This document shows positions 119 to 29,146 of a stretch of 64,000 bases of DNA, one piece after another. The notes below the pieces were generated by a model. The model did no database searches and was not told where the DNA came from. It was given only the letters and a program-made list of their open reading frames with translations. How positions within the stretch are numbered: position 1 is the first letter of the stretch; each line of letters begins with the position of its first letter. The translations under genes and the position numbers were made by a program. This DNA is from Iphione sp. A-MEVVRFRX5 (lineage: Eukaryota). The stretch lies in the NCBI GenBank assembly GCA_976226885.1, contig OZ320315.1, positions 36,766,001-36,830,000 of the forward strand. Reading direction: 5' to 3'.

Positions 119-3100
119 CTTGTTGGCAGCCCAGCTGATGGAACATGGAACAGTGAAGACAGACCAAACAAATGAACGACCTCTGCCATCAGTGCTGGGT
201 AAGAACCTTTATACCATAAATTCAAACTGGAGACTCGGCAGAACTTTCCCTCAGTTTGAATGCCAGCTCTGAAGCTTTTGTAGAAGTAACCTTACATTCT
301 CGTCCATGAACAAATGAAGCCAATATTTGGGATACTTTAGGCAGAGGTTCTTGAGATTGGTTACGTGTGGCAAACATGAAAAGATTTTGCAGCATATTGC
401 AAAACGACAAAATGTGGTTGAACGTCGCCAAGTGTGGTAAGATCTGGTTAAACAAAAGAGAATGACAATTTTTTTTTATTTGGATATAGTAAGGATCTTT
501 CCGTTGGTGCCATCTGTGCCAGTTTACGGTTGACATACAGCAGTTTTTTCCCTAAAGTATTGAAGTATGTACTTGTATATTGCAATGTATGTTAGAGCAT
601 GGCTTGTAATCGTGATGCAAAAGCCCGGTAGTACGCATCCAAATATACATATGCAACATTATTGTAGAGAGTAGGATTCACCTGAGATATTGTTCTCTCC
701 TTTACAGATACATGTATGTTCTGACAACTGCCTATACTAGCTTATTGCCCCCTGATTCATGGGGGGGGGGGGCTAGGAATACTGCTGTCCATCATGATCT
801 TGTAGGGCTATCTACTTCTAAACCATTGTATGAAATGCTCTGATTGTTGAGAATGTTGTTCGACTATTTGGAAGTTTGTTACTGGGATAGGTTTGTCATT
901 TGAGGTGATCTATATATCCCAAATGAGATCCTGTTAGTCTTCTGTGTAGCAAAGGTGCAGTCAAGTATAAAATGTCCACTCACAGATATGACTAGGTACT
1001 TCACATCTTAGGTGGCCGGCAGATATCAAAGTTTCTGTTTCTTGTTTGATAAATAGTTATTCAGTACATAAATGAATATGACACTGGCCGTATCATCTAT
1101 AGTCGCTTTACAGTATGATAGATTTAAATTGTTTTACATATACAGCAGGAATAGAAGCAAATTCAAGTCAGTTTATTGTCTAAAAATTTCTTTTATATTC
1201 CTTTTCCAGACACCATCCCCCCGAATATCCTAGAAGATATCAAAGGTGAGTAGTTAAAATTGATATCGATATTTCCTCCATACCCTCCTGTTCTCATGAA
1301 AATATTTGTAATGATTTTGGAAAGTAGTGTAATATTTAATGTCGGGGTACGTGGTTGTTTGGTGTAATGCAGATTTTTTTTTCCAAAAGAAAGCTGGAAA
1401 AATTGGTGAAAGTCATCGGCTCGGTCGCTTTACATCCTACCGTGTTCTTAATGTCACCTCAGAGAGAAAGATATCACTTACATTGTTTAACTTTTATGAA
1501 CTCTCGATGGACATAAGTAAATAGATATATATATTTCCAAAATAAATGGGATCTATATAAAGTTCCTGTTTTTTGTTTCTCTTCCTAGTTCGAACTTGCT
1601 TTGTAACAACACTGGAACGTGCAAAAGATATTGCAGCCGCTCGGAATGAAGAGGATGAAAGCAAGGTAGATTTCAGAAGTTTCTTTATAATATGCTCATA
1701 CCGCCATCTATGTAATGAATGCTGTCTGATATTAACAGTGCATGTACCTACATTCCTGTCAAGTGTTAGAATTGTGAATATTCTCAGTAACGAAAGCTGT
1801 ACCTTTTATTCCAGTACCCTACGCCACCCCCAGACGTGGATTATCCGTTAGATGGCGGTAACATCTTGCACATCAAAGGCAAAATTAGGTGGGTCAGGAT
1901 TTGCAGCACATTCATCTCAGATTTATGTAAGCATCGGGGGAAAAACGAGGAAAATTTTACAGCGGTGTTTCTGAGCTTACCTGATAGTCCTGACCCTTGT
2001 GCGTGAAACTGTAGGAAAGATTTGTCCGGGAACCTCATTTGTACGGTTCTTAAATTTGAACACATTTTGGCTAGAAGGATTCCTTGGTGACGGTGTGAAA
2101 AAAGTCTCCAATTTGAACTAGAGGTTTCTTTATCGCATTTAGTTTAACCGTATAGATATATCTAATGATTTAACAGGGTGCATACTTACCTACTTGGTCT
2201 CCACTCAGTTTTCTAGAGCCCTGGAGCAGTGTACATGCGACGATGTTTGTGGATTGGTGAAGTAAAAAATACCTTTAAGATTATGCGCTGTGACCAGTCC
2301 GTTTTATTACTACATGTACTAAACGCTGCAAAATTGGGAATACATAAAAAATAACAGGGTGCTTATTCTTCAGGGAACACACGTGTGAGGTACTTTTTGA
2401 GCAAGACAACGAAGAACAATCCATTGCCACCTTGATCCTTGAAGCCATTTTAAAGGTAATGATAAATTGTTCCAATAGTGTTATAACCGACAGAAAGAAT
2501 CTGATCATATTTCATGCCATAAACTTTTTGGGTGTCTTCTTCGATAGTTGTTTTACCATAACTAAAGAATGTACATCTGAGTTAATTTACTTTCGCAATG
2601 TGTTGTATAGTAGATCAAGCCAATCAGGTGAAGGAAAAACATAGATCTGACTTTAAGATTTAGTTGGCAACATACGTTTCACCATTACACCTAATGAAGA
2701 CCCATAAAGAAGTCGAAAGCTTGTCTGTACCAACTGTGACACACCCAATAAATTTCCAACTTCTGTCCTGCATCTGGGTGTCAGTCTGACCATCCTACAT
2801 AACCTACGTTTATGTATTTTTCTTGTCAAAAATCTTACGCTCACACTTACACACACACATCTTCAGGCCTCCACATGTTAATCTGTATTGATCGATCACA
2901 ATCTCCACCAGTGTCCAGTCGACATGCGCCGCACGCTGTCTGAGAACATCCTGCTGCTCGGAGGTACGACCATGCTGCCTGGTTTCTGCCACCGCATGCA
3001 GGTGGAGCTGCGTGAGCTGCTCGCCCGACATCGGTATCGCGAGTCCCTCTGTATCAAAGAGCTCAAGTTCCAAGTGCCACCGGCAAGGGCCAACTATGCT

Positions 3101-7744: not shown

Positions 7745-10700
7745 ATGGATTCAAACTCTTCTGCAAGTTCCTCAATGTTCCAGAGGGCTCTGTTGTCTGA
7801 GCTTCCCAGTGACTTTGGGGAAACGTACTTGGCCAACCAGGGAACCCTCTTGCATAGGATGAATGCAAAGAAGTTTCAGAGAGGTGGGTATGTGGACAAT
7901 GTTGTCCTTGAGAAGATGGGTGCAGACTTCCAGGTGTCTGCCATATGCTACAGGAGCATGAAGAAGAAAGAGCCTCCCCAACGCATTAACTTTGACATCA
8001 TTGTTAAGGCTGCAGAAATTCAGGGAGCATTGTGCTCTTGTGTAGCAGGGTAAGTAGAAACCCTATCATGTAGATTTCATTGTCTTCCACAGTCATTTTA
8101 ATCCTAATTTGTTGAATGTTAATTCAAAATTAAGTCATGTAGCTTTTGTTATCGTGTCGACTTCTTAGGCTAATAGCCAATAAGTTTATTTTCTTAAATT
8201 TAGATATGTCATTTTGACTGTTTTCACTGAGCCTGTATTATTTCCTCACCTTGTATTTAAAGAAGTTAAATTGAAACTTGTCATCAGAGTAATATGATTC
8301 TTGCACATCAATAGATCAGGTAGACGTCTTCCTTGTTAACATTAGCATTATTCTGTTTAAAGACCTACTGTAATTTTCAAATCGTGTCACATTGTTAGTG
8401 TTATCAAGTAGAATTTCTGTGCTGTTGTTAAAACTGATTCATATCATGTAGATTTTTGTCACGACCACTCAGGATAACCCCCACTCGCATTTGAACAGAT
8501 TTTGTTGTCACGTAGGCTATCTACGCTCATTTGTAAACTGAAGTATGTCACGTAGACTTTTCTCACGGTAGTTAATGATTTCCCACACTCGTTTTTGAAC
8601 AGAGTTGATTTAAACTCGTACACACAGTGTAATGTTTCTCGTATATCATTAAGACTATCATGTAGACGCCTTGCCTCTTAACATTATCATTATTATTAAT
8701 GACAAAGTAATTTAATTTCCAAATCGTGTCACCTAGAATTTGTTGTCACGTAGACTATCTGCGCTCATTTTTAAACTGAAGTATGTCACGTAGACTTTTC
8801 TCACGGTAGTTAATGATATCCCGCACTAGTTTTTGAACAGAGTTGATTTAAACTCGTACACACAGTGTTATGTTTCTCGTATATCATTAAGACTATCATG
8901 TAGACGCCTTGCCTCTTAACATTATCATTAGTGAATGCATTGAGCTTATGAAACAAAATGAGAAACAGGCTTTCCAATATAACAATTCTTTAATTTCAAT
9001 CAGTGAAAGATTTCAAATGTCCATGGAAGGCGATGTACAACTGCAGAACTTGTGGATCTCTCTGAAGTATTTGGCAATATGTTGAACATAATGTGATGAT
9101 TTAGGCAACTATCAACAAACTGATAGCAGTTCACATTCTAAGTATTAAATTGATTTGATGATTTCAAAAAAGTAATATACAAAATCACAGACGGTCCTGG
9201 TATTAAATCATTTGTATGCATCACAGTGTTTTACAGCAATTTTAAATATATTGGACATACATATACTTGCTTATATAGCCATGTTGCTTCACAAATAATA
9301 ATTGAACATGCATTGTTCTTTAGACGTGCTGGGAACTGTTCCCACCTGCAAGCCGTAGTGTACACCTTGAGGGATTGGATGTTGAATGGCCTGAAAGAAG
9401 TCCCTGAAGCAGCAGCATGCACTTCTAGGCCCCAGCAATGGGGTAAGCCTTGGCGTAAGTCGGTTGGTCCTGCAGCCGCAGCCTCGTTGGTTTTCGCCAA
9501 CCCAACCAAGGAGAACCGAAAGAGGAAACCTCCAAAGGCAGAATTTCGTGACAACAGGTAATTTTTACACTTTCCTTACAGTGTCACTGTCTTAGTAATC
9601 TGTTAGACACATTTACCTTTCATGTTTATACCAAAATGGCAATATTTGTATTCGAATAATGTAATTTACATCAGATCTTGGAACCATATGCAGAGAATCT
9701 GTTTATAACATTACAAAAGTACTGTTTACTTGACTTGTAAAAATTTTGCATTTATCATGTTGAAACCAGTAAGCTACATTAGCAAAATAATACAATATGC
9801 TCAAAATTACATCAATTTTTTTTCCAGGTGTGTGGAACTCAAACAAGAACCCTTCGAGGTGCTACCAAACTCCATATTGCCGGTGTCTTACTTGACCAGA
9901 GGTCCTCATCACCTTATGCAGTCTGATTTTTTTGGCATGATTCCTCAGAACTGTGCCTTGTCCTGCTTTGTAAGTATAATATATACAGGATTCATAATTG
10001 GTACTCACTGAAATGACTCTGGACATCCAATGTTTCTTACATTTAATTTGATACACTTTTTGAATTTTGAATCTAATTTGTAACATCAAAGTTCCACTAT
10101 TCAGGTTATGAAACATTTCTTACAAATTTTGTCATTTTAGTCTACCTTTAAACCACAATGAAAGTATCTAATCTAGTAGTGGATATTTTGGGGTGCATGC
10201 TCCCACATTTGGCTGTGAATGTGACTACACTGGCATGGTCATTTATTGGCAATTTGCATTACCTGCGTGTTGTAAGGCACATACTGTGGTATTCTCCTAT
10301 AGATGCTATGGACTTAGCGATAATATTTGCTTCAAGGATAATCTGCAGGTGGCTAAAGGATACATGGTGACTAAACATGTCAACATGATTTTTATAACAG
10401 TGTGTCATTTTGCGTCACTGTCTTTAATGGCTGCCTAACACGTCATTAACTGTGACTCATCGCTGCGCACTGCACGTTCTAACTGTAGTCGTTTTGCATT
10501 TTCCATTTTACCTTGTAATCCATCAAGTGGACACCCACCGATCATGGTGAAAAGGTGCAAATGGGGTACGTGCCTAAGGAATAACCTGCACGTTCTAACT
10601 GTAGTCGTCTTGCATTTTCCCTTTTACCTCGTAAAAGGCACCCACCGATCATGGTGAAAAGGTGCAAATGGGGTACGTGCCTAAGGAATAACCTGCAGGT

Positions 10701-13700
10701 TCTAACTGTAGTCATCTTGCATTTTCCCTTTTACCTCGTAATCCATCAAGTGGACACCCAGCGATCATGGTGAAAAGGTGCAAATGGGGTACGTGCCCAC
10801 AGGATAACCGTTAGCCACATCGCATGAAAGGCGGGATAAAATTTATTCCGTTCCCAAAACCCGAGACTCCGCTATGAAATTTTAATTTAAAATTGTATTT
10901 CAGACATATAGCCTTACCTAAGTCCATTATGCTCTGTAGGCGACCTCACAGCACGAATGTCAGAAATGCCAGTTTACATAATGTCATATACATTTGCCCT
11001 ACCTAAGTCCCTTATGCTCTGTAGGCGACCTCACAGCACAAATGTTAGAAATGCCAGTTTACATAATGTCATATACATTCGCCCTACCTAAGTCCATTAT
11101 GCTCTGTAGGCGACCTCACCACACAAATGTTACAAATGCCATTTTACATGATGTCATGTACATTCGCCCTACCTAAGTCCATTATGCTCTGTAGGCGACC
11201 TCACAGCACAAATGTTAGAAATGCCTGTTTACATGATGTCATGTACATTCGCCCTACCTAAGTCCATTATGCTCTGTAGGCGACCTCACAGCACAAATGT
11301 TAGAAATGCCAGTTTACATGATGTCATGTACATTCGCCCTACCTAAGTCCATTATGCTCTGTAGGCGACCTCACAGCACAAATGTTACAAATGCCAGTTT
11401 ACATGATGTCATCTACATTCGCCCTACCTAAGTCCCTTATGCTCTGTAGGCGACCTCACAGCACAAATGTTAGAAATGCCAGTTTACATAATGTCATATA
11501 CATTCGCCCTACCTAAGTCCATTATGCTCTGTAGGCGACCTCACCGCACAAATGTTACAAATGCCATTTTACATGATGTCATGTACATTCGCCCTACCTA
11601 AGTCCATTATGCTCTGTAGGCGACCTCACAGCACAAATGTTAGAAATGCCAGTTTACATGATGTCATGTACATTCGCCCTACCTAAGTCCATTATGCTCT
11701 GTAGGCGACCTCACCGCACAAATGTTAGAAATGCCAGTTTACATGATGTCATGTACATTCGCCCTACCTAAGTCCATTATGCTCTGTAGGCGACCTCACA
11801 GCACAAATGTTACAAATGCCAGTTTACATGATGTCATGTACATATACCGTATGCCCATATATATTTGTCATTTTTGAAATGGGTCTTGGCTATTTAAGGA
11901 ATTGACTGTTTGAGGCAGAAGGAACAAAATTTATGATAATGTAAATATAAGAAATGAAATGAATGCATTTGCCCACATGACACAAACATATCAATTTAAA
12001 TGAAATATACCAACACCACACCGGAATACACACTCAAATTATATTGTGATTAAATCAAGCAGTACTTGTGATAACAAAGGAAGAAATAGTGCAATTTATT
12101 ATTTATCCTTTGAACGCAAAGTATAATCTTGAAAATTAACTAGTGTGCAGCAAACAATCCAAATTTGGTCTAAAATTGTAACCAAGGAGTTGTCTAAACC
12201 ACGGGACAAAATTTTGAAATTTTTGATACGCGCTATTGCTCGCTCAACATGGATCGGGGGCGTGCAATGCGCTGCATTAACAGAACATCGCACTCCGCCA
12301 TCTGTCCATGGGAAGGAGCAAATGGCGGTAGGTTTAGTTTCAAACCAAGACTCTCAATTTCCGGTGAAATTGTGAACCCCTTATCTGCCATCAAACCGTC
12401 GCCAGGAAGAATATACTTCAAATTTAGGAGTCTTTGGATCAAATCATAAAACTTACATTCTTTTGTAAGCTTTTTGTCCGAAATAGAACCTGAATATAAA
12501 GCGGAAGCAAAAATAATGCATCCTCTGGGGTCACATGCAACAAGTGCTTTCAGAGTATTTGCTGATTTATAATCCCAATAACACTGGCTCTGTACCAACA
12601 ATGAACTGGGCTTTTGAATTTTCATTTCCGTGCCATCTAAAATTGCCAGTGTATTCGGGAATTCTTTCCTATATTCTGCAGGCATTTGCTTGATAATTTG
12701 TTCACGGTGTGGCCATTGAATTGTGCATCCTAACCTTATAAACATATAATGAATCATGTCCCAGAATAATTCACCTGCATCTTGTGGAGAAAGTCCAAAA
12801 CGAAAGGCCAAATCTTTGAAATGTAAACCTTTTCTGAGTCTTGATAAGACTAAAAATAATTTATCTTTGGCTGCCATTGCTTGCACAGCAGTTAATCTCC
12901 TGGTGGCATTATACACATGTTCAGTGGTGTTGGTTGGAAATAAATAATTAAAAAGGAACATAAATTGGTAATAACTGAACCCAGTGTAATATTTAAGTAA
13001 ATCAGGAATTTTACTATTAAGAACAGAATCAAAAGAATGAACCACAGTTTTCTGCCTCAACAGTTTTACCTCCGCAGTTAACTTCTTATTCTCATCTTGA
13101 GAGTCTAAAAGATCTCTCACTAGCTCCTCCTTAACTGTTGTAGTCTTGATGAGCTCTCGCTGCATTTTGTTCTTCACTGCCTTAAGCATTTCGTATTCCC
13201 CTGGGTTTATCCCTGTAAAATGAAATGAAGCATCCATTTTTTTTAATTTCTAAATTTAGTTTAGTTGATGAGACAGTAGTAAGGCAGTTGGATGTGAAAT
13301 TCTGTGTATGGTTAATTGGGAGTGGATATTTTTGAATGGAACATATGGTAGAAGACCCTGGGTAGATTAAGTGGGTAACAGGGTAGATCTACATATGGAT
13401 GGTGGTAGATTCAGTGGGTATTAGGGTAGGTGTTCATACAGTGGATGGTAGGGTGGCTGTAGTGTAAAAAGAAATGTAGTGTGTCTTCCAAAGTAGGTGC
13501 ATGTTTCATGTTCGTATTGGGGATAGAACTTTTGAAAAGAAAATCATATTACATACAATTAGGCATATATATATATTTCTCTTTTAATAGGACCATATCA
13601 TCAAGGAGAGTCAACTCCCTATCGTACGTCACGCCACCTGTGAAGGCACCATCTTCCCTAAGGTCTCACCGGTGGCTTTGCCTGAGGTTGATGCTACAGT

Positions 13701-14358
13701 ATGGGAAGGGCTGGGTTTAACTCAGACCCAGGCCATACAAGTTGAGAAGGAGACCGTGCAGCAGACTGCATCTAAGAGGTGGTGGGAATTGAGAAAGAAT
13801 CGCATAACTGCATCGAAATTTGGGCTAATCATGCGGTGGAAGGCTAAGCCTACCGAAGCCTTCATCAAGTCGATAGTTCATGAGAGGCACTTCACCTCCG
13901 AGGCTACTACCTACGGTCGGCAAAATGAGGATAAGGCGAAATCTGCTTATCTGGAAAAGTTCCCTGGACACCATCTACATTCCATTGGCCTGGTAATCAA
14001 CCCGATGTGCCCTTTCCTTGCCGCGACACCTGATGCCAAGGTGTGTAGGGAGGATGGGTGCTCCATAATGGAGGTGAAGTGCCCCTTCTCTGCACGGGAT
14101 TGCACCATCAAAGAGGCCATGTCGTTAAAGGACTTCTGCTTAGAGTCTGTTGGAGGAGTGCCACACTTGAAAGAAAACCACCAATACTGGTTCCAGGTGC
14201 AAGGGCAGCTTATGGTGACTGGTGCCAGGCGCTGCATCTTTGTTGTGTATACTAAGAAGGACATACACGTGGAGGAGATTGAAGTTGACAGCGTAGCGTG
14301 CCAGGAGATGTTTGGAGTGCTATATAATTTCTATGTGAAGTACATGGCACAGGATTGA
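7745..14358 (+). CDS. SWIM zinc finger + YqaJ/lambda-exonuclease-like PD-(D/E)XK nuclease, 482 aa, apparently intact
   Basis: Exons 7745-8049, 9324-9557, 9828-9969, 13591-14358 have GT-AG ends, match in phase (2,2,0) and total 1449 nt. The SWIM motif CSCVAGRAGNCSH spans the first junction and is followed by CTSRPQQWGKP. Nuclease motifs RITASKFG, YGRQNE, FLAATPDA, MEVKCPF and YWFQVQGQL lie in exon 4. Confidence 0.88.
8501..8931. repeat. Tandem duplication, ~240-bp unit x2, in intron 1 of the SWIM-YqaJ gene
   Basis: The block tttgttgtcacgtag...ttaacattatcatta occurs at ~8501 and ~8738, nearly identical. Confidence 0.85.
10366..10875 (+). pseudogene. Truncated inverted copy of the THAP-transposase upstream region and first-exon start, internally triplicated (~110-bp unit x3)
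   Basis: Aligns by eye with the reverse complement of ~28250-28530. Each unit carries ATGGTGAAAAGGTGCAAATGGGGTACGTGCC (MVKRCKWGTC). The last unit continues into a HRMKGGIKFIPFPKP-like sequence and then breaks off. Confidence 0.8.
10911..11843. repeat. Minisatellite, 85-bp unit x ~11
   Basis: Unit gccctacctaagtccattatgctctgtaggcgacctcacagcacaaatgttagaaatgccagtttacatgatgtcatgtacattc recurs every 85 bp with few substitutions. Confidence 0.95.
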
Positions 14359-17300
14359 GATGGTAGCTGATGAGCAGGATTAAGAAAAAAAAAATAAAAC
14401 TTACATGTCTCAATTGTTGTGGATGCTTGATCCTTTGTTTCAACAGCAGGCTTAATGTTATGTAATCTGTGAAGTATAGAAGGAAGCATTTTGAGTACAT
14501 TTTTACATAAAGCATTTCTTTCAGTCACCACATGAAATCATTTAAGGAATCTAATTTTCAAATCATCAATTTAAATGTTAGTGTGTTAGATATATTAGTA
14601 AATTATTAATGCATACTACACCGGTAACAGGTTGAGATACAGAAAATTGAACTCAAAGTTCAACCAGGTGTTGATCCTCTGAAAACATGCAAAGCAAAAA
14701 TATGTACCTTCAAGTATTCACCATATGCTCATTTTAAGAACTTAAACATTATGTAAATCATATCCAGATGCATGATTAAAAAAAACAGCTGTAAACTTTC
14801 ATTATATGTGACCAAATTTAATAACTTAAGTGAATCTTGTCATTACTTCCTTTATATTGATGCAATGAAATCTATCCACCAGTCAGGTGTCTACATGAGT
14901 TACATTAATATCGCATGAATCAAGGAGAATGTAATTATACCTGTCAGTGAACAGACATTATGCTAAACCATGAGCATCTGACACAATATTTAATATTGCC
15001 TGACAACATGGATGTGCAATTTTTCATAACTGAACAGGGCAAGTGACTTATAACACAAAGATTATCCCACGACTTAGAAAACCCTGTCTACCGAGTCAGC
15101 GTTTGTAATTTTGTTTCATGTTGACATAAGTTTTTAATGGACGTAGACATCACATTTTTACCTCATTTTAAGAATGACATAAGTCATAAGATTTTAGGGC
15201 ATGTGAATTCCGACTCATTATACAACTGGTAATATNNNNNNNNNNNNNNNNNNNNNNNNNNNNNNNNNNNNNNNNNNNNNNNNNNNNNNNNNNNNNNNNN
15301 NNNNNNNNNNNNNNNNNNNNNNNNNNNNNNNNNNNNNNNNNNNNNNNNNNNNNNNNNNNNNNNNNNNNNNNNNNNNNNNNNNNNNNNNNNNNNNNNNNNN
15401 NNNNNNNNNNNNNNNNNNNNNNNNNNNNNNNNNNNNNNNNNNNNNNNNTCTGAAGTGTGTATAAAGAAGGACACAGTGAAGGAAGGAGGGAGGGCAGGAA
15501 GGAGGGAGGGAGGAGACAGAGACAGAAGGATAGACCATGAGAAATACCATGGATCACTTACCCCCCAGAGCTGAAGCCTGAATGTGCTGCCAAAAAGTAG
15601 CCCAACAGCTGACAACCCACAATCGCTGTCAGTGTCGATCGCATTTGTTTACAAAATGAACTATCACGTAAACGGGAATTTCGACTACAGTTACAAGTAG
15701 AAGTATACATGATCTACACAACAATGAATGCAAGAAATTATAATCATGATTGATATGAAGCATTTCCAGCATGATGTATACAAAAAAAGGCAAGACGACT
15801 CGAAGAAAATTCACCCGTGCGATCCATTTGTCAGACCCGCGTAGAAAGATTGTACGGTCAAGAAGTGAGTATATGCATTATACCAAATCATGAATTATTG
15901 TTCACATTTATCATGTTGAAAGGGTGTAATATTAGAATGCTATCACAATACATGCATCATGTCGAACTAAACTCATCTGAGTGACCCATAAGCTATGACA
16001 CAGAAGTGTTCCAGTTTCTATGTCAAAGGTCCCGCAGGGGGTCATAACAAGATGGCGGATAGCCTCTGCTTTTCGCGCTTCGAATTGTACTATCAATTTC
16101 ACTCAAATTTAACAGTTTACTTATCATTCGCACATACTTTCAACATGATAAATACACAATCCATATAAATCATGTATATGGTAGCAATCAAACATATTCT
16201 AATGTCCTTCTCGAAAATATTCGATTGTATGTAGTGGAACGGCCGAAATAATTTATTTAGGTCAAGCCATCGACTGGGCTACACCACTAACTTATTGTCA
16301 GAGAATGTTCATCATGTACAATAAAATAAATAGTTCTCCAAATTGTCAGTCTCCGCCAATTTTATACATGAGGAATACATATCGCTTTCTATCATGCTGA
16401 TTCAGTCCTCTAAAGTACGATTTTCAGTGCTATGTACATTCATACTTTGATGTCCGCTGGAACCGGTTAACTCAATAAATAGGTCGAATCACTGAATAGC
16501 TTGAGCCCGCGCTGCAGTACATAAACATACTGCATCCTCGTAGGTCATGTAGACACATAGAAACGTACAACGTAAAACTATCAAAGCTACACGAGTCAAG
16601 TAGATTAAAAAAATGTTTGATGAATTTTTAGTATACTCCTATGCCGGGATACTGTCAAAATAGTTGAGTTCAACAATTTCTGTATATAGGTGCAACTGTA
16701 GGTGCAAGTATGTGCAAAGGTTTATGAATCCACATGATTTTACATGTAAGTTTAGTTTTGTGTATGTGCTTACATTTATGCACATCTGTGTGCTCTCCCT
16801 TAATCCCTCTCTCTCTCTATCTTCTCCATTCAACAGAATTGTTTTTCTTCTTTTAGCCGCAACTGCCTATCATGCCCATATGTATCTATGTAACTCAACA
16901 TTCATATATTTTTACCATAGGTCAACATGCCTCCCAAAAAGTTTCTCAGCATTAGGGAAAAAAAAGCTGCACATAGTGCAGACCAGCAGCGGTATATAAA
17001 AAAAGTAATGGAGAGAGACCCGGGCTTCCGCGAAAAAGAACGCCAAAGAAGCAAGTTACACTATGAGAGAAACAGAGAAGCCATCTTAGCGAAAAGAAAA
17101 GAAAAACGGGACAGATTGGTACGAGAGGCACGTGCTGTGCCTATTGTAATTGAGGACAGTGGTAAGTATTAGAAAAGTAACTGTTTGTCAGTTCAATTAA
17201 GTGATATTACTAGATTCAAATGGTAATTTTCAGTAGTCCTACAAGCCTAAAATATATTTTATTGAATGCTGTTATGTCATTATTATGCTACAACTGTCTT

Positions 17301-20300
17301 CATTGGAAACCACAATATATAGGGCCTATTTTCCATGCCTTTTCTTCCTGATTAATGAGCCATAAATGTAATTCTAAAGATGATTTCAAATTGTCATATA
17401 TAGAAAGGTATTCATCTTTGGAACATGTATATGGAAAATATTGACTAATAACAGTAACTTTTTATCCCATCACTAGACTCAGACGAAGACCTAAGGCTGG
17501 CAGAGTTCATTGCCTTTGGGCAAGTACGCGCAGGTGAGTATCTTGGACATTGGGTTAAGTATCAGGATGATTAGGGTGCTCATTTAGCATTTGGTGACAC
17601 AAGCAAATTTCTATATTTTATTGTTCTACCGTACATGCAAGGCAGACTGGTAAGAAGATTGCTTTCATCAAGTATGAAGGGGCCACTAAGAGCAACAATA
17701 TCAATTTCATACAACTAGTTATATACACAGAAGTTAATGTGTATTTGAATAATCTGCTTGAAAAAAATAACTAATCCTAGCTAGAGAATGCAGGTTTTGC
17801 AAATAAAAATTAACCTGATCACAGCAGTTAAAAACAAAGAAAATGAAAACATGTAAGAGGCAAGGGCTAAGGTCAAGATTATGACAAGACTTGTATAATT
17901 TTCAAGCTATCACAGCCGGCAGACTGATTTGTCAAGTAAAACTATATTGAAAATTAAGTTACAGTCACTAAAATTTGACAATTGGATTACATGCTTGATA
18001 GTAAACTTGATGTTGTAAAGTTTACTGTGATATTGATTTTCATTGAAATATTCTATTTTCACAGAGCAACATCTACAACAAAATGACCTACCCAACATAG
18101 AGCCTCAAGAATTGCCTGCTTTACAAGATCACCAAAGACAGGACCGGCCAAATCCCCAAAAGAAGAAAGAAACAGCTCGGCTCAAAGACCTGTCTGCCAG
18201 AAGACCGGTGCAAGGCAGGACCGAGAATAGTGCCCAAGACAAACCAATCGATTTCACACAGGATGAAAGATTGTAAGTATATAAATTTAATACAGGTATA
18301 TAAAATGATAAGAGTGGGGAGATAGGTCAGTGTTAGTGCACTAGTCCACTGACTGATAGGTCACATTTTCATTGCCAGGCCTGGGACTCTTCATCAAGAT
18401 GAGAGAGATTTACCGTATTCCCAAACCATATTGGTCAATAAATCTTAGGAAGGCTGAGAGTGTCTAGGATTCTGTTAACTATGCACTAAAACATCTCAGA
18501 AGACTTATTCATAAAGAGTAGGAGGCAATCCTGTGTATTCTTGCCTCTCATTTCTCAACAGTACATTGGAAGTATGGTTTCATTCTGTCCAAAGGGCTTG
18601 ACATTGGGTTGGTGTCCCCAAACGTGCATAGACAATTTATAGTATCACTAAATTGTACAGTGAATGCACATTAATGTAAGGAAGTTAGAGTGTAAACCGA
18701 TGCAAAGGAGCAAAAGCCAGGTTAGCCCATTTCTATCAAGATGCATGAATATTTATCAAATGTAAAGGTAAATGTAGAACAAACAAAATATAAATATTGC
18801 AGTAGAATGTCAGCATATTTAATAGATTGTGTTCTTGTACTGAGAAGACGAATGAGTCTGCTACATTATAGTTTAGTGCAAATATGGTGAGAGGTAAATA
18901 ATTACATAATATTATTACTCATCTTGTTCTTTCTTTCAGGGTTGTCCAGGATGCAATATCACAGTTTTTCTGAAGGAGGGACAACGTAAAGAGCATGACA
19001 GAAGACATAATTTATTATAAAGTGTGTTTTATATTGTTAAAATGACTATTTATTCCAGTTGTACATATTTGTAATATAGACATAACATTTATTTAAATCA
19101 TGGGTAAGGATAGGGAATCAGCTTAAGTGGGGGGGGGGGAAATTGTACATTTTGTCATTTAGGGAATAGTAATTGACATATTCATTTACTCCAGTTGTAC
19201 ATATTTGTAATATAGACATAACATTTATTTAAATCATGGGTAAGGATAGAGAACCAGCTTAAGTGGGGGGGGGGAATTTGTACATTTTTGTCATTTAGGA
19301 AATAGTCATTGGCATATTCATTTACTCCAGTTGAAGATATTTTTATATACATTAAGTTTATGTCAATCAGGGTATGGATAGGAAACATGATTAACTAGGG
19401 AAGGGGAATAGGACTTTTATAGTAACTCTTGTATAACCAAGAAAAGGGAGATGCACCTTCGTGGATCATTTAACCTGTATGCAAGTAATTAAAGTTTGTT
19501 AAATGCAATGTATTGTTTGTTATTTTTCTGTAATACAGTATTAATTTACATGATAAAAGACATCAAGAAGTAAATGAAAGTAAAGTCTGGCTAGTTACTT
19601 TCTACTTCATTTCAATGTTAATAGGCAATAAATATGAACTCATAAGAAAAAGAAGGAAATACTTCCTAAGAATATATATAACACTTACCTTACATTTCTA
19701 TGTCTACTTGTTACTTTTCCATCCGATACATGGTAATCCATAATATATCTCAGGTCTATATGTATCCAACTGGAAATGAATATAAAAGGAAATATCAGAA
19801 AATTGCACAACTGTTGAGCAAAGAAGATATTCATATCTAATAAGAGAGAAAAATAGGCAACAGTGGGGAGAAGAGGACACCATAAGAAGATAGGAACTCT
19901 TGTCGATTTTAGCTTTTTTTATTGACTATGCAGGAAAAGGAGTCAGGGATAGAGGGAGGGACCGAGAAAGATAAAGAGAGAAGGAGGGAGACAGAGGAAT
20001 AGGGAGAGAAAGGCAGAGACAGGCAGCAAGAGATAGTGGGAGAGACAGAAGAGAAAGAGTGATGGAGAGAGAGGGAGAGGATGGGAGAGGGTGAGAGAGA
20101 GGGAAAGAGGGTGAGAGGGAGNNNNNNNNNNNNNNNNNNNNNNNNNNNNNNNNNNNNNNNNNNNNNNNNNNNNNNNNNNNNNNNNNNNNNNNNNNNNNNN
20201 NNNNNNNNNNNNNNNNNNNNNNNNNNNNNNNNNNNNNNNNNNNNNNNNNNNNNNNNNNNNNNNNNNNNNNNNNNNNNNNNNNNNNNNNNNNNNNNNNNNN

Positions 20301-23300
20301 NNNNNNNNNNNNNNNNNNNNNNNNNNNNNNNNNNNNNNNNNNNNNNNNNNNNNNNNNNNNNNNNNNNNNNNNNNNNNNNNNNNNNNNNNNNNNNNNNNNN
20401 NNNNNNNNNNNNNNNNNNNNNNNNNNNNNNNNNNNNNNNNNNNNNNNNNNNNNNNNNNNNNNNNNNNNNNNNNNNNNNNNNNNNNNNNNNNNNNNNNNNN
20501 NGAGGAAGGGAGGAAGAGAGGGTGAGAGGGAGGGAGGTAGAGAGGTGAGAGGGAGGGAGGGAGGGAGAGAGAAATGGAGAGACAGAGGGAGAGCGAGGGA
20601 GTGAGAGAGGGAGGGAGAGAGAGGGAGTGAGAGGAAGGGAGGGAGAGAGAAAGGGAGAGAGGGAATGAAAGAGGGAGAGAGAGAGGGAGTGAGAGGAAGG
20701 GAGGAAGAGAGGGTGAGAGGGAGNNNNNNNNNNNNNNNNNNNNNNNNNNNNNNNNNNNNNNNNNNNNNNNNNNNNNNNNNNNNNNNNNNNNNNNNNNNNN
20801 NNNNNNNNNNNNNNNNNNNNNNNNNNNNNNNNNNNNNNNNNNNNNNNNNNNNNNNNNNNNNNNNNNNNNNNNNNNNNNAAAGAGAGAGGGAGTGAAAGAG
20901 GGTGAGAGTGAGAGAGGGTGAGAGGGAGGGATGGATACCAGTCTAGCTGTCGACATCAAGTACCTACTGTTAAATCATACCCTTTTTTAAATAAAAAAAA
21001 AACATACTCATGGCTGACGATCTATCGGCATTCGTTGTCATACACCACATTCAAAATAGGTACATGTTGCTGCACTGCTTTTTTTTGCTGCAGAACTACT
21101 TCCTGTTCCTCCTTCCCTCCAAACTGACAAGTAAGTGCTTCACAGTGTCTGCATAAAGATATGAAATCTGTGCATATGATCTCACTATGGCAAGTACAGG
21201 CAAGGTATATGATGAAGACACATTTAATCTACCACTTGTCATGTTGATCCGCAATATGCGCTACTACATGCTTCAGTAGTAGAGTTCGAAGTCTACCACT
21301 TGTCATGTTGATCCGCAATATGCGCTACTACATGCTTCAGTAGTAGAGTTTGAAGTCTACCACTTGTCATGTTGATCCGCAATATGCGCTACTACATGCT
21401 TCAGTAGACGTACGTTTAACCTTTCTGCACAAAGTCGAATATGTCATATTCACAACAATGATTCGCATCTTTTCAACATTAAACATGAGGTACATTTAAC
21501 CTTTCTGCGCAAAGTCGAATATGTCATATTCACAACAATGATTCGCATCTTTTCAACATTAAACATGACGTACGTTTAACCTTTCTGCGCAAAGTCGAAT
21601 ATGTCATATTCTCAACAATGACTCGCATCTTTTCAACATTAAACATGACATACGTTTAACCTTTCTGCACAAAGTCGAACATGACATATCCAAAACAATG
21701 ATTCGCATCTTTTCAACATTAAACATGACGTACGTTTAACCTTTCTGCACAAAGTCGAACATGACATATCCAAAACAATGATTCGCATCTTTTCAACATT
21801 AAACATGACGTACATTTAACCTTTCTGCACAAAGTCGAACATGACATATCCAAAACAATGATTCGCATCTTTTCAACATAGAACATGACGTACGTTTAAC
21901 CTTTCTGCACAAAGTCGAACATGACATATCCAAAACAATGATTCGCATCTTTTCAACATAGAACATGACGTACGTTTAACCTTTCTGCACAAAGTCGAAC
22001 ATGACATATCCAAAACAATGATTCGCATCTTTTCAACATTAAACATGACGTATGTTTAACCTTTCTGCACAAAGTCGAATAAGTCATATTCTCAACAATG
22101 ATTTGCATCTTTTCAACATAGAACATGACGTACGTTTAATCTTTCTGCGCAAAGTCAAACATGACATATCATAAACAATGATTTGCATCTTTTCAACAAA
22201 GAATGTAATGTACAATTAACCTTTTCAGCTGGTAAACCGCAGTCATAATAGATTCGAAAATAATAATCAAAATATATAGCCTGGAATACTGTTCACATGT
22301 ATTGCAAAAAGGTGTGCTAAATGTTTGAACATTTAATTCACAGATATTGCACGAGGTCATCACACAAAGAAAAAAAAAATCCAGCATGGACAGACCAGTA
22401 AGTGGGTTGGATGTATAGAGCATGTAACAACTGTTTCAAATTATTATGCTATGATGCAATTCATACTAGTATACATTAATGAAATATTCACCAATTTTTA
22501 TCACAAATGCAGGGAGAATGAAAGGTAAAAAAAAAAGGCTATGCAATGCTGTGGTAGGCGTACTGACCTGAAGTTTTATTCATTTCTTTTTCAGCTGATG
22601 GCACTGCACCTGGGAGTAATGACAAGTGAGTAATCATTAAAATTGCCTGCTTACCATTTATCACATTTAGGCAACATCTGTAATATACGAAACGAATGTT
22701 CAGACCGAATGCAAGAAGATGTAAAATCAGCCAGGGATAATTGACTACAATCACTACTTCTTTCTTTTTGAAGCATTTATCTACAGGTGTAGGGCCTGTT
22801 CCTGGGTTCATCCCTTGTCCCAGTTCTATATGGGTGGGATCCTTCTGTTGGCACGCCACACCTACAGGACATATGTGGTAAGGCTCTCAAATGTAAGCTA
22901 CCTAAAAAAACTACACTGCTTACGTTACCATGGAACAGTATTACAGTGGGAACTTCCATTGCACTTAGGATATGTGCAGATACAAAAACATGCATTCTTC
23001 AGAAAAACCGAATGAGTTGTATAAAAAAAAAGAAAAGCTAACATATAATAACAATAACCTATGCTTTCTTTTTGCAGGGTCCCGTGTATCCAAGATGCCT
23101 TCACGTAAGTTAGCTATTAAACAACTAAAATGTAACATCTTATGGAAAGAGCTATTTATATCACTCAAGAAAAAAAATTTACTCAATGTAAGACTTATAA
23201 TCGTGACATCTATTCTTCCGCAGTGCCAGATGGAATGGGCAATAATACTGTCCGGTGGTCAGTAACATAGAAAGCATAACATGTTTAAAGATCATGTTCA

Positions 23301-26300
23301 CTGGTTATTTTTTTACAATTTGCAAATGGTGCAAGTTTTTGTTTTCCTGTTTCTTTTGCAAGTATTGTACAACACACACTTGATAAGTCCATATTCAAGT
23401 TATTATTATTATGGAAATCAGACATTCAAGGAGTTCAAAAGCTGCAGGATCATGATCTAAAACGTAAGCCTGTTATTGGGTCCTGTATATTTAAAGGCTT
23501 TGTTAATAAGGTTATGTTTTTTGAAAGTTTGTTGAGTTCTTGTTGGTTTTCAACCCCAAATAATGTAGAGCAGAAGACTATGTGGAAGGAAGACCGACAC
23601 CATAATTCCAACATCCAATGGCTTTAATCAGTATAGAACCGTTGCAGCTTCTACAAGCTTGCAAGCTTTCAAACCTCTCAAGGGTCTTCCTCAAGCTCGT
23701 GGGCAAAGTAGAACAAAGTAAAATAATGTCTCATTATCGCAATCCGGACCAATAATGACAGATATTTAATTGCTAAATTCTCTGTCATGTCCTATTACTA
23801 TTCGTTGCAGAACTTCTTCAATATACATGTAGGGACGCAACTATATCGCATTAACAATTGTCAAACCTTCGAAAAATAGAACTTATATGCTTCATTCACT
23901 TTCTGTTTCAGTTGAAATCCTTGTCTGAGAAGACGGTCCTCCTGCCGCACCACGTCTTTTATAACTTTACGTAACAAAGTATTTAGAAAGGAAACACATT
24001 TATAGCCTCTTTATTTCATTTTATTTTTAGCGGCCGTCAATAAAGTGTAGAGGACAAAAATTGCGTTATTGTTTATGTCTGCTGTAGAGGGTTATATGAT
24101 ATTATGGCGACTACAGGCCTTAGCATGAGTTTTGCTGTATTGCACTAAACCATCATGCAATACACTTCCATGGGAAAAAAAGGCAAGGAAGGGTTGGGGG
24201 GGGGCAAGTAGCAGGGTACCACACGGGCATAAAACAAGTAATATTTCCATGACTACCCCAAATGAACGGCTTTTGGAAAGGCCGTGCAACAATAACTCCT
24301 CAGGCTAGCCTGTGGCCGCCACCACCGACCCTACCAAAAAGAAGTATCCAGGCTCCAATCATTGACACCCATCTTGCAATGCTATACTCTAAGATGGAGC
24401 GACAGAGTACATGAAGAAATGAAGGTACGGATGAGCAATAGGGTATCATTTATGTGTGCAAACCATCAGGCCCAGACTATCTATTAAACACATACATGGT
24501 AGCAACCAAGAACAAAAGCTTGAGACTGGTAGAAAAGATAAAAAATGCACAACAGGAAATAACCGTAATAAGAGAAATATATTTACTTACCACAGAATGT
24601 ATGGCAAAATGTACATGTCAAGCATAGAGGGAATAATACTTTCCTAAAAAGTAAACTAGTCTTTAATTCATTTCAATACAAAAGCTGCAGAAATAACAGT
24701 GCATTTGACCCACAAAAATCACATCAAACTTAGTACATGAGATTAGTGATGTTAAGTAAATAAAACGGGAAAAAAAGACAAATGGAATTGGCAAGAACTT
24801 CAACAAATATCATACCCCAAAAAAACTTAATACTAAGCAAAACCAAAAATATACTTACATACTCAAATCTGTTCCATCCATTCCATGAGGCTCATTTAAT
24901 GGTCTACAAATGAAACAATATTGTGAAGGATCAACAATCATTAATAGATATACATTCAAGACACCTACAAATAAAAACAGCTTCCATTTTAAAAAAAGTG
25001 ACAACAAATACACACACAAAAAAAAGAATAGCCAGTAACATTAACAGATACATTCAATGATATAAACTACTTCTATTTCTGCACTTACATTTCAAAGTCT
25101 GAGCCATCAACTATAATTTCCTCTGGATCTGTATGGATGTGGTCATCAACAGGACTGCAATCACAGAACATATCTCACTATGAAAATATGGCAGTTGATT
25201 ATGTTAAGACAACCAGTATAACATTCTGAGCGGACTTCAAGTTTAATACATACATAGGTAGTTGACATGGTAACAGGCAGTAAAAGATACCTGTGTAAAG
25301 CATTGATAGGAATAAAAAGAATATTAACAAGAGTGTGGACCTATGAGGTCTATTGTCCCCCNNNNNNNNNNNNNNNNNNNNNNNNNNNNNNNNNNNNNNN
25401 NNNNNNNNNNNNNNNNNNNNNNNNNNNNNNNNNNNNNNNNNNNNNNNNNNNNNNNNNNNNNNNNNNNNNNNNNNNNNNNNNNNNNNNNNNNNNNNNNNNT
25501 TTACAAACACCTTGATTGGCACCTTGTTTTGGGGTTGGTTGGCTAGACTTGTTGAAGTCCTTCAGGTTTACAACTCTTGGTTCTGCATGACTGAGCAAAG
25601 CACCCTCAGTTCTACCTCACTGAGCACCAGACCTTTACAAACCCTCTGTTCTGCATGAGTGAGCACAGCTCCCATGGTTCTGCCTCACTAAGCACCAGAC
25701 TGTTACAAGCTGAAAGTGGTAGAGGGGAGATATTGGTGAGTGTGTATGTGCATGGTCAGACCTAGGAACCCCTGAACCAGGTATGTATGTTTGTAGGTGT
25801 GTTAGCAAAAGAATAAGATTAGTACAAATTTCACCTTCAAAAAACTTGGATTACTACCAGAATTACCCAGTGCCATGGGGCCATATATACCAATATCATA
25901 TATTAAAATCAGTTCTTTTCAGTGAAGGGTTTGAGACTTATAAGACCCACAAGAGTGTGACGGATGGTCGGGACACCAGCCTGTAGCATTCCTAATGTCC
26001 CCCCTTCTATGAGGCAGGGGACAATAAAATGTTTCAACACAACCACATCACATCGCATCTCTATACTCACATTTCTAAATGCATCTCTTCCTCGTCAAGT
26101 TCATCACTTGCAGACGGATCGGGGGGGACTGCAAATGAAACATATAGAGAAAAACTTACATACAAGCCAAGAATGAATCCTGATGTACAATTGACACCAA
26201 CACCCAATGACATAGCACATTGAAATGGCTAACCATTAACACACCAACATAAACCTCTGGCAGAAATATTAAGGTAAAAATATTTGGCTGTAAACAAATT

Positions 26301-28342
26301 AACACATGTAGCATTGGAGAATCTTCGGCTCAAAAAAAAACAAATACATACTCTTAATTCATAACCAACCCATTCATGGGAATATGTCCTACATTGACCA
26401 AATAGCAGCAACAACATGAGGTGACAAAAAATATTTGACCAAAATTACATCAAAAGATTGATGGGAATGAAGAGAATTAATCGAAAATGTCAACGCAACT
26501 ACCACACATCACTATACTCACATTTCAAAATTCATGCCATCAATTATGACATCCTCATCAAGTTCCTCATCAAGTTCCTCATCAAGTTCAGCACTTGCCA
26601 ACGGATCAGGGGGTCTGTAAATGAAAAATATATTGAAATGTTCAAATACAAACAAAGAATAAGTATTCATGAACCATTAGCACATAAAACCCAAAAAGAT
26701 ATGTCAATAAAATGAAAGACCACTTAGAGACAAACATACATTTCTGGCAGAAATAATGAAGTACATATATTGTTGCTAAAAACTATCAGCATGACCAACT
26801 ATATACAGTTCTCTTTCACATCCAAAATTATATATTATTTAATAAAATTTTGAAAATGAACAAAACAATAAACAGCTTTTCCATATGTAGAAAGTAGCAT
26901 GTCTAAATAACAATCAGAAGTAATTTAAAATGTATGTTATGCAAAAAACAACAGAAAAGTACATACACTTCAGCAGAAGCATCTTCAGAAACTAGTTCAG
27001 TTTCCGGTCGCCATCCTCTACAGAATAAAAGGAAAATTACATGAATGATTGTATTATATTAACAAAAAAAAACACTTGCTTTAAGCAAATGAATCAGGCA
27101 GTAAAAAAAGAACTAAAGAAATACAGTACATCTACAAAAAAAAAAATAAATAGTCTGTGAACCAATTTCAATGTGCAATAAAACATGATGACTGATATAT
27201 TCATGAAATCCCACGATAGATATAATACATTTGCATGGAGTACAGCCGGGATTACACATATCACACAAAATAACTACTTAAACTACACTAACCGGGCTTC
27301 ACACTCAGCTACGGCCTTTGCCGTCGCGGGGATTGGGTCTGGGTGGTCATCGGTCGGGCCGTGCCCACCAACAAAATGCTGTTAAAGAAAAAAGGTGAAA
27401 TTGTAAAGCTTATCTAACCATAATATTATTGCACACAAAAATTTTCTGACCCTTAGCATCATGTAGATTAGGTAAAATGACCTACACTAATCAATTAAAA
27501 ATTTCTGCTTGATAAACCTTCGAAAATACTTATGGAATTGAGTACAATATAAACATTTCCATGTTAAGACCACGACGAATAAATATGGAATTGATAAATG
27601 AATAGCAAGTACTTAAGCAGACTGGACCACTTGACAACATGATAAACACCTACAGTATTTGGCCCTTCATTACTTCATCAGGCAGACAAAACGTACAAAA
27701 AATGATTATAGAGTCACATTGCTTTGTTAAATAACTAGAATCTTACAGTAAGGGGGCATCAGTAAGACATTTTCACCATGACGTATTAAAGTTAAACAGA
27801 CACATGCAGAGAACATAGCCGACTTCACCGCTTGACAACATGATAAACGCCTACAGTATTTGGCCCTTCATTAGTTCATCAGGCAGAAAAAAACGTAAAA
27901 AAAAAATAAATGTGCCTTACTGACATCAGTACACATAAACATAATAATTGAGTTGACATACATTCAAATAAATTTGACCATCAGATGCAATCGACTCATT
28001 ATCCCCCCCCCTTCCAAAAAAATGGCGCCTACGTTCCACCGTGACATTTAGGAAATTAATCCACATGATATACAGACATCAAAAATAGGAAAAACATACA
28101 TTATGCATATCTATGTCATGTATAAAATCATGTACACTTACCACGGAACAAACAAAACGATGACGATCAATATCATCAACAACAAGATTATCCCGCCAAC
28201 GACCACACAGACGAATCCACCAGCGACATTTCCGTAGCTGAGTCTTCGGTTTGGGGAACGGAATAAATTCTATCCCGCCTTTCATGCGATCCGGATAACG
28301 GTTATCCCGTGGGCACGTACCCCATTCGCATAATTTCACCAT
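12099..28342 (-). CDS. THAP-HTH-DDE transposase (PIF/Harbinger/ISL2EU type), ~569 aa, with one 1-nt frameshift near the C-terminus
   Basis: Phase-consistent minus-strand exons: 28342-28142 (THAP start, MVKLCEWGTC...FIPFPKP...W...CGR...VCSV), 27378-27293 (HFVGGHGPTDDHPDPIPAT), 27017-26967, 26614-26522, 25154-25089, 24903-24859, 24643-24591 (ends phase 1) and 13212-12099 (phase-1 acceptor). The last exon holds the HTH (LSRLRKGLHFKDLAFRFGLS) and the catalytic ILDGTE / MADKGF / HVERAI motifs. The join across the 11.4-kb intron is inferred from phase and domain logic. Confidence 0.75.
16927..18973 (+). CDS. Orphan 177-aa protein with a basic, helical N-terminus
   Basis: Exons 16927-17161, 17477-17533, 18065-18272, 18940-18973 have canonical GT-AG ends and phases 1,1,2; total 534 nt ending in TGA. 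N-terminus MPPKKFLSIREKKAAH...EKERQRSKLHYERNREAILAKRKEKR. Confidence 0.7.
19048..19335. repeat. Tandem duplication, ~136-bp unit x2 plus a partial third copy
   Basis: attta(t/c)tccagttgtacatatttgtaatatagacataac... at ~19048 and ~19184, each copy containing a G-run. Confidence 0.8.
19940..20930. repeat. GA-rich purine simple-repeat tract interrupted by two assembly gaps
   Basis: Degenerate (GA/GGA/GAGG)n sequence flanking N runs at ~20122-20501 and ~20724-20878. Confidence 0.9.
21228..21407. repeat. Tandem repeat, ~64-bp unit x3
   Basis: tctaccacttgtcatgttgatccgcaatatgcgctactacatgcttcagtag occurs three times. Confidence 0.9.
21407..22197. repeat. Minisatellite, 80-bp unit x10
   Basis: ctttctgc(a/g)caaagtc recurs at exactly 80-bp spacing from 21421 to 22141. 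Confidence 0.95.
22595..23265 (+). CDS. 3' micro-exons of an orphan C4 zinc-finger-like protein; 5' end unresolved
   Basis: Exons 22595-22625, 22787-22877, 23078-23104, 23224-23265 splice in phase to ...DGTAPGSNDKCRACSWVHPLSQFYMGGILLLARHTYRTYVGPVYPRCLHCQMEWAIILSGGQ*, with two CxxC pairs, the second built across a junction. Another plus-strand micro-exon lies at 21094-21130. Confidence 0.55.
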
Positions 28343-28692
28343 GACTGATGGTTGTCAACTTGATAGATTACGGGGTAACAGACAAAATGCAAGGCGCCTA
28401 CAGACCGAACGTGCAGTGCGCGGCTATGAGTCACGGAGACAGAGTCAAGGACGTGTCGGACAGCCGTTAAGGACGGTGACGTAAAATGACCCGCTGTTAT
28501 AAAAATCATGTTGCCGCGGGTAGTCACGACGTAAAAGTTGCGCGGAGCTACAAAACTACCGCGTCGTATCTGGTGGTAGCGATCGGTGAGCGCCTTGGTA
28601 ATTCTTTTAATAAATTCAGAAGAAATGTAGTTTTTGCATTCCCTACAAAATAACACCAAAACCAATGATACTCGATGAGTCAACCCCCTTAA

Positions 28693-28814
28693 AGATGGTT
28701 TATGGTGTTTGATTTGAAAACCCGAGAATTTTGGCCAGAATCGCGAAGCGATATGGGCCAAAATTCGAGGGTTTGAGTGCTATGATTTTTCAGATCAAAC
28801 ACTAGCAACCATCT
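28693..28814. mobile_element. 122-bp TTAA-flanked mini-element with 8-bp TIRs (AGATGGTT), Kolobok-like MITE candidate
   Basis: TTAA at 28689-28692 and 28815-28818; ends AG...CT; terminal AGATGGTT/AACCATCT are reverse complements. Confidence 0.45.
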
Positions 28815-29146
28815 TTAAGGGATGTTCTTACAACAAATAACAAATAAACCTAGATTATCTTTGCCTTTTTCGGTGTTCCTCTACCTGTTGCGTCCTATGG
28901 CCGCCATTTTAGAAACTGTGCCGTACTGCTTTTGTAAGCTGTCTTTTCATTGGTTTTCGGTGTTACTTGTTATTTTTTCAATTAATTTTGTAGAAATTTA
29001 TAAAAACATAGGAATTTCAACTTTTCTAGACCTTTATTAAATACGTTTCATTTTAAAACATCAATATGATTTTTAATTGCAAATTCTCAACATAGCGTCC
29101 ATCTCTTCATCAAATGTACGGGACAACAGAGCGTATTTTTTTTTTT

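Follow-up and report, generated by a model that had tools for sequence, protein, structure and literature searches.

Analysis of a 64,000-nucleotide stretch of Iphione sp. contig OZ320315.1 (assembly GCA_976226885.1, positions 36,766,001 to 36,830,000; hereafter the window) revealed two genes on opposite strands that are threaded through each other. The plus-strand gene encodes a protein with a SWIM-like motif and a YqaJ/lambda-exonuclease-like domain, and the minus-strand gene encodes a THAP-HTH-DDE transposase. The nesting is mutual: the HTH-DDE exon lies in the last intron of the plus-strand gene, and the YqaJ exon lies in an intron of the transposase gene. The region is likely one copy of an ISL2EU transposon (Harbinger-like, PHIS) from a clade whose two genes are nested in each other. 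Judged from gene order and predicted intron phases, the interleaving is inherited by one whole ISL2EU branch and is not peculiar to this copy. ISL2EU/IS4EU elements, which belong to the PHIS or Harbinger-like superfamily, contain a pair of open reading frames (ORFs), one for a THAP-HTH-DDE transposase and one for a YqaJ protein (PMC4482050, Han et al. 2015; PMC9179366, Etchegaray et al. 2022). The original prediction, made from the sequence alone, had named this family, and the Pfam matches as well as the two papers agree with it. Coordinates of the features are collected in Table 1.

The plus-strand gene has an intact ORF. Joining its exons by script gave 1449 nt, corresponding to 482 codons with a stop codon at the end alone. 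All three introns are canonical (donors GTAAGT at 8050, GTAATT at 9558 and GTAAGT at 9970; AG before 9324, 9828 and 13591), and the whole gene is free of N gaps. With these splice sites and the 482-codon ORF, the earlier claim that the gene is spliced in phase over a 3,621-nt intron holding the HTH-DDE exon was borne out. Pfam analysis placed a YqaJ match on the plus strand at 13672-14358 (E=1.4e-14). The frame of this exon opens exactly at the acceptor. Because a TAG that includes the acceptor AG closes the frame and no ATG precedes the domain, the YqaJ exon needs upstream exons. A search of 1.8 billion representative proteins revealed 8,289 homologues of the YqaJ exon, 80 of them at E<=1e-30. 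Seventeen or eighteen longer homologues align collinearly to 9313-9558 as well, and one (P0155) aligns also to 7790-8050. The gene model is thus supported by homology, since full-length homologues carry the SWIM-region and YqaJ parts in the same order. The sequence CSCVAGRAGNCSH, which is built across the junction of exons 1 and 2, represents a CxCxnCxH (SWIM-like) motif. A CxCx5-12CxH motif was found in 21 of the 44 long homologues, and the pattern C.C.AG...C.H in 9 of the 12 that were printed. No Pfam match to SWIM (PF04434) was obtained for the window gene or for the full-length homologues.

On the minus strand, an ORF scan combined with Pfam analysis identified a frame at 13237-12099 that contains HTH_Tnp_4 (1.8e-08) and DDE_Tnp_4, the latter in two pieces (4.2e-25 and 7.8e-11). 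The catalytic residues D, D and E are present in the DDE exon and align with those of the homologues. The exon consists of two frames, and the alignment of the homologues passes from the first to the second at 12254. This corresponds to a frameshift of 1 nt near 12254-12256, in or beside a C5 run. The original prediction had correctly placed the DDE exon (13212-12099) inside the plus-gene intron but had missed the frameshift. Its phase-1 acceptor was confirmed at 13213/13212. The two THAP exons are 50 to 53% identical to the THAP N termini of three homologues (P0035, P0042 and P0053; exon 1 over 28342-28145). The THAP residues C..C...C..H and FP.P can be read in the 28342-28145 frame, and the Pfam match to THAP (E=0.028) fell below the cut-off. 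On these alignments, the window transposase carries an N-terminal THAP domain, linked to the DDE exon by predicted splicing. The linker of the transposase contains tandemly duplicated cassettes with the consensus PPDP..DELDEE..DG.DFE. One of them, 26128-26071 (58 nt), is frame-shifted by a C7 run and must be skipped, because the exon chain is otherwise not open. The three cassettes with phase 2 at both ends could be included or skipped freely. A further exon candidate, 27017-26969/26963, occurs in no open chain and was rejected.

The exon that is joined to the DDE exon must pass from phase 2 to phase 1. A strict scan of 14359-27292 (pyrimidine-rich acceptor, GT[AG]AGT donor, open frame, 40 to 150 nt) yielded exactly two candidates, 24643-24591 and 14466-14405. 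In the original prediction, the THAP chain ran to 24591 and continued at 13212. The chain (28342-28142, 27378-27293 and the cassettes) can indeed end in phase 1 at 24591, but 14405/13212 is the more likely junction, as judged by position and phase. The 62-nt exon 14466-14405 sits 47 nt past the YqaJ stop codon, and the penultimate exon (exon 3) of the related element in the oyster Saccostrea sits 27 nt past its YqaJ stop codon with the same phases, 2 to 1. The junction 14405/13212 was favored over 24591/13212 because of this match in phases and position, and acceptor 13212 is probably not paired with donor 24591. Sequence homology to the penultimate exon was sought in the other loci and none was found, as such exons are short and their sequences are not conserved. 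When 14405/13212 is chosen, the last intron of the transposase gene measures 1,192 nt, and the intron of about 10.4 kb is the preceding one. Under either junction model the YqaJ exon falls within an intron of the transposase gene, so that this part of the original prediction holds whichever donor is used.

The 3' splice sites of the two catalytic exons stand back to back, with a spacing of 378 nt in the window and about 44 nt in the oyster copy. The first AATAAA after the stop codon is located at 14393 for the plus-strand gene and at 12100 for the minus-strand gene. If both genes are transcribed, their primary transcripts would cross 12099-14358 in opposite directions and would therefore be complementary there. 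Overlap between the spliced mRNAs would amount to no more than a few tens of bases, since the plus-strand AATAAA at 14393 lies directly beside the 62-nt exon of the minus strand. At 14393-14404, the nuclease AATAAA (+) adjoins the 5' splice site of the last transposase intron (GTAAGT 14404-14399, -). The geometry can be described as follows. Small zinc-finger exons (THAP in one gene, the SWIM-like CxCxnCxH in the other) would form the start of each gene, close to a separate end of the element, and each gene would read inward, its large catalytic exon lying past the catalytic exon of the partner, so that each catalytic exon would fall in the last intron of the other gene.

The same order, namely, THAP exons, antisense YqaJ exon, DDE exon, and antisense SWIM exons, was found at other loci. 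At the Saccostrea cucullata locus (L002, LOC134255348), NCBI annotates a gene for a 505-amino-acid THAP-DDE protein at 10001-13020 (+) and a gene for a 405-amino-acid YqaJ protein at 11125-14226 (-), which overlap in antisense orientation. Tblastn and exact exon mapping gave the order THAP exons, YqaJ ORF at 11913-11125 (-), DDE exon at 11957-13020 (+), and SWIM exons (-). The intron measures 858 nt, of which the YqaJ ORF takes up 789. The oyster element resembles the window copy in the interleaved order, in the THAP intron site (between CSx and HF), in the penultimate exon of phase 2 to 1, and in the phase-1 acceptor of the DDE exon. In contrast to the window copy, it is compact (about 4.3 kb), and its proteins are approximately 41 to 44% identical to those of the window. 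The pair L002 and L003 was rejected as a marker of the element ends since the two are 99.2% identical over all 23 kb; they are probably two assemblies of one place.

The interleaved order was also present in the pipefish Syngnathoides biaculeatus (L004), where the DDE exon lies within a 1,218-nt intron of a stxbp1b-SWIM/YqaJ gene model, and in the mussel Mytilus galloprovincialis (L006), which has an expanded copy of about 16 kb. The DDE acceptor is in phase 1 and the YqaJ acceptor is in phase 0 in every annotated interleaved case. The exon before the YqaJ acceptor measures 142 to 148 nt and passes from phase 2 to phase 0 (142 nt in the pipefish and 148 nt in the mussel). A comparison of exon order among ISL2EU loci had been proposed as a check together with the original prediction, and the same order and phases were recovered in Saccostrea, Mytilus, and Syngnathoides. 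At the pipefish locus (CM034207.1, 8001-17020), isoforms of syntaxin-binding protein 1b (571 and 755 amino acids) end in intronic ISL2EU SWIM/YqaJ exons. These models represent either exonization of the transposon or chimeric predictions.

A scan of metagenome contigs added 80 more loci, and all loci were then classified by the position of the antisense YqaJ match relative to the DDE match. Besides the window, 11 interleaved loci were identified, together with 3 truncated loci consistent with this order. The metagenome contigs L013, L015, L016, L017, L019, L020, L021, and L081 belong to the interleaved group, and the number of metagenome contigs with this order can be put at 8 to 11. About 46 loci have a plain convergent layout, including a spider locus (L009) and intronless elements. 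In three of the convergent elements (L010 to L012), intronless genes for a 517-amino-acid transposase and a 555-amino-acid YqaJ protein stand tail to tail. These elements and the spider locus share all four modules with the window copy, and their DDE and YqaJ domains are homologous to those of the window with 30 to 39% identity. They differ in that their genes do not overlap and that both YqaJ and SWIM are situated downstream of DDE.

To place the two layouts, a maximum-likelihood tree of DDE sequences was used (76 rows, quick search, unrooted with midpoint only), which included 36 convergent loci after removal of duplicates. A branch with a support of 99 in the Shimodaira-Hasegawa-like approximate likelihood ratio test (SH-aLRT) has all interleaved loci on one side and the convergent elements L009 to L012 on the other, and one change of state suffices to explain the distribution. 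The rows nearest to the window are L016, L021, L017, and L013. The interlock had originally been treated as a feature of this locus; the locus survey and the DDE tree instead reveal a clade-wide layout, ancestral to one ISL2EU clade. At the level of sequence, three things are established: the layout, the conservation of intron positions and phases, and the confinement to one DDE clade. The interleaved order, as read from these exon models, is beyond chance because order and intron phases recur in independent loci.

Two loci deserve separate mention. In the loach Misgurnus anguillicaudatus (L001; CM050766.2, 10001-12281), a gene for a 525-amino-acid THAP-HTH-DDE protein falls in the interleaved clade. 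The phase-1 intron that precedes its DDE exon is retained (113 nt), and no YqaJ or SWIM sequence was found nearby. This gene may represent a transposase that became solo secondarily or was domesticated. A contig of the convergent clade (L087) carries a YqaJ fragment at 175-435 (-) upstream of the THAP exon. This fragment fits neither layout and may belong to a neighboring copy.

A single origin of the interleaved layout, from the widespread convergent one, is most likely. The simplest route would be a tandem duplication of both terminal exons, followed by the loss of one copy of each. Both genes would stay functional throughout, and the interleaving would have persisted because no simple mutation reverses it. 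Its long retention could reflect selection, or equally a rearrangement without easy reversal.

That the interlock is a selected device appears unlikely. Under this explanation, which goes back to the original prediction with its possible co-inheritance and its control by collision or RNAi, convergent transcription through the catalytic exons would give double-stranded RNA or polymerase collision that throttles the element, and the interlock would also tie the genes together, so that internal deletions leave neither a transposase-only nor a nuclease-only parasite. The layout has been kept with its intron phases in a clade that spans fish and bivalves, the partner exon fills nearly the whole intron in compact copies (789/858 nt in the oyster), and the polyadenylation signal of the plus-strand gene abuts a 5' splice site of the minus-strand gene. 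However, retention is likewise expected of a rearrangement that is hard to revert, and most ISL2EU lineages manage without the interlock. The loach gene, which lies within the clade, kept the phase-1 intron and lost the YqaJ exon, indicating that separation is possible. The related proposal that nesting is a built-in regulator of a two-gene transposon is similarly doubtful; nuclear double-stranded RNA or polymerase collisions, caused by obligatory convergent transcription through both catalytic exons, would set the transposase-to-nuclease ratio or a ceiling, with spliced mRNAs that are not complementary.

A spliced THAP-HTH-DDE gene nested with the YqaJ gene was preferred to a stand-alone HTH-DDE gene. 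In the latter case, which is very improbable, a THAP-less gene would start at the ATG at 13237 without being spliced across YqaJ, and the 378-bp spacer would drive it divergently with the YqaJ exon. An in-frame ATG is indeed present at 13237, 8 codons upstream of the DDE acceptor, and many database ORFs contain HTH and DDE only. These entries, however, are mostly ORF calls on short contigs, and the alignment of homologues begins at the acceptor and not at the ATG. Annotated THAP-HTH-DDE proteins of the oyster and the loach are spliced at the same phase-1 position, and a divergent YqaJ exon would have no start codon, its frame opening exactly at the acceptor. Least probable is an artifact or accident in which a scaffold misjoin at an N gap or the nesting of unrelated decayed copies created the interleaving, as the four gaps of the region and the inverted THAP 5' fragment at 10361-10879 (a sign of past rearrangement or insertion) might suggest, but the plus-strand gene, the DDE exon, and the 62-nt exon are all in gap-free sequence, order and phases match independent loci of other species, and the ORFs are almost intact, unlike old debris.

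Several points weigh against the reading of the region as one element of an interleaved clade derived from convergent ancestors. Terminal inverted repeats (TIRs) with a GG start and an AT target-site duplication were sought by short-word blastn and pattern scans in the sequence left of 7745 versus that right of 28342, and none was found. With the termini not located, gene content and layout are the grounds for regarding the region as a single element. The splice junctions of the window are predicted, and three assembly gaps interrupt the link between the THAP exons and the rest of the transposase gene. A homopolymer assembly error could account for the DDE frameshift. The ancestral layout was read from the wide spread of the convergent form on an unrooted tree. 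The window revealed no second remnant of either DDE or YqaJ, and no intermediate or relic backs an origin by duplication and loss.

Table 1. Features of the interleaved ISL2EU region (positions in the window)
Feature	Position	Strand	Details
SWIM-like/YqaJ gene, exon 1	7745..8049	+	ATG at 7745; ends ...CSCVAG in phase 2; donor GTAAGT at 8050
SWIM-like/YqaJ gene, exon 2	9324..9557	+	phase 2 at both ends; completes the CxCx7CxH motif CSCVAGRAGNCSH
SWIM-like/YqaJ gene, exon 3	9828..9969	+	142 nt; phase 2 to 0; donor GTAAGT at 9970
SWIM-like/YqaJ gene, last intron	9970..13590	+	3,621 nt; no N; contains antisense DDE exon
SWIM-like/YqaJ gene, terminal exon	13591..14358	+	YqaJ/lambda-exonuclease-like domain; phase-0 acceptor; first AATAAA after the stop at 14393-14398
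THAP exon 1	28142..28342	-	ATG at 28342; 67 codons; donor GTAAGT
THAP exon 2	27293..27378	-	HF...DPIP; intron splits CSV and HF, as in the oyster element
Acidic mini-exon cassettes, four related	24859..26614	-	26614-26522, 25154-25089, and 24903-24859 symmetric, phase 2-2; 26128-26071 out of frame
Alternative upstream exon (choice of the original prediction)	24591..24643	-	53 nt; phase 2 to 1; KVLFPLCLTCTFCHTFC; mutually exclusive with the 62-nt exon
Giant intron	14467..24858	-	N gaps one to three inside; about 10.4 kb as written
Proposed penultimate exon	14405..14466	-	62 nt; phase 2 to 1; LHNIKPAVETKDQASTTIET; strong polypyrimidine tract, CAG acceptor, GTAAGT donor
Proposed last transposase intron	13213..14404	-	1,192 nt; no N; contains antisense YqaJ exon
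Transposase terminal exon	12099..13212	-	coiled-coil region, HTH_Tnp_4, DDE_Tnp_4; AATAAA overlaps the stop
N gaps	15236-15448, 20122-20501, 20724-20878, 25362-25499		first three in the giant intron
Fourth N gap	25362..25499		in an intercassette intron, beside a 68-bp minisatellite
Decayed inverted partial copy of the element 5' region and the first 36 THAP codons	10361..10879	+	about 80% identical to 28533-28230
85-bp satellite, 11 copies	10911..11843	.	between the inverted fragment and the DDE stop

Although nearly intact, the copy is swollen and probably disabled; its nuclease ORF is whole, and its transposase has one frameshift. Its introns are inflated by satellites, gap-bearing microsatellites, and the decayed inverted 5' fragment. 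All four N runs are located in introns of the minus-strand gene and border GA-rich microsatellites or the 68-bp minisatellite; no reading frame crosses a gap. The interval 12099-15235, which contains the DDE exon, the YqaJ exon, and the 62-nt exon, is gap free. The giant intron 14467-24858 contains GA-rich microsatellites and tandem arrays with units of 136, 64, and 80 bp. Cargo genes were sought in it by testing 12 ORFs, none of which revealed a Pfam domain, and an Rfam search of 7000-29500 gave no match. One ORF of the giant intron, at 16927-17172 (+), encodes 81 amino acids rich in Lys, Arg, and Glu (MPPKKFLSIREKK...) and has no Pfam match.

The inverted copy at 10361-10879, inside the last intron of the plus-strand gene, contains three copies of a 107- to 117-bp unit as well as stop codons. 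The only inverted homology, the one between this copy and 28533-28230, is internal. A reading of this pair as long TIRs bounding an 18-kb element was rejected because the SWIM exons would lie outside it, the fragment has stop codons and the triplicated unit, and the relatives keep SWIM exons next to the DDE 3' end. Within the block 10361-11975, all of it in the last intron of the nuclease gene, the inverted fragment runs straight into the 85-bp satellite. Possible origins of this block are a piece of a diverged family member and an aborted repair; it could also be a feature of the family. Just outside the THAP 5' region, a 136-bp hairpin was found at 28686-28821, with 35-nt arms that are 89% complementary and a 66-nt loop. 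It resembles a small miniature inverted-repeat transposable element.

Like the published ISL2EU elements, which average about 4.8 kb (PMC4482050, PMC9179366), the window copy is an animal-hosted, multicopy element. In contrast to them, it exceeds 20.6 kb as written, and alternating opposite-strand exons are not part of those descriptions. Searches of open papers and searchable supplements (a scope outside which Repbase entries lie) gave no mention of alternating exons of ISL2EU genes, in agreement with the earlier suggestion that the architecture had not been described. Among cellular genes, nested and interleaved pairs occur in which one gene has exons within an intron of its opposite-strand partner, and transcriptional interference is a known consequence. 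Nested genes and such interference have been treated elsewhere (PMC5174743, PMC3192792). In contrast to cellular pairs, the nesting in ISL2EU is reciprocal, involves both catalytic exons, is contained in one mobile element, and is inherited across host phyla.

Taken by itself, the result from the window is modest, because it concerns one swollen, probably disabled copy. For the family, the finding means that ISL2EU, treated in the literature as carrying two ORFs only, includes one clade, in fish and bivalves, whose genes are interthreaded with conserved splice phases. The classification of transposable elements is affected, because the layout can serve as a clade marker. Annotation is affected as well, since gene finders split, merge, or chimerize such loci; the NCBI models of the pipefish fuse syntaxin-binding protein 1b with YqaJ exons. 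The same four modules in interleaved versus convergent arrangement offer a clean natural comparison for transcriptional interference and antisense control in a mobile element. If the nesting did act as a regulator, gene order inside a mobile element would be a control circuit conserved across phyla.

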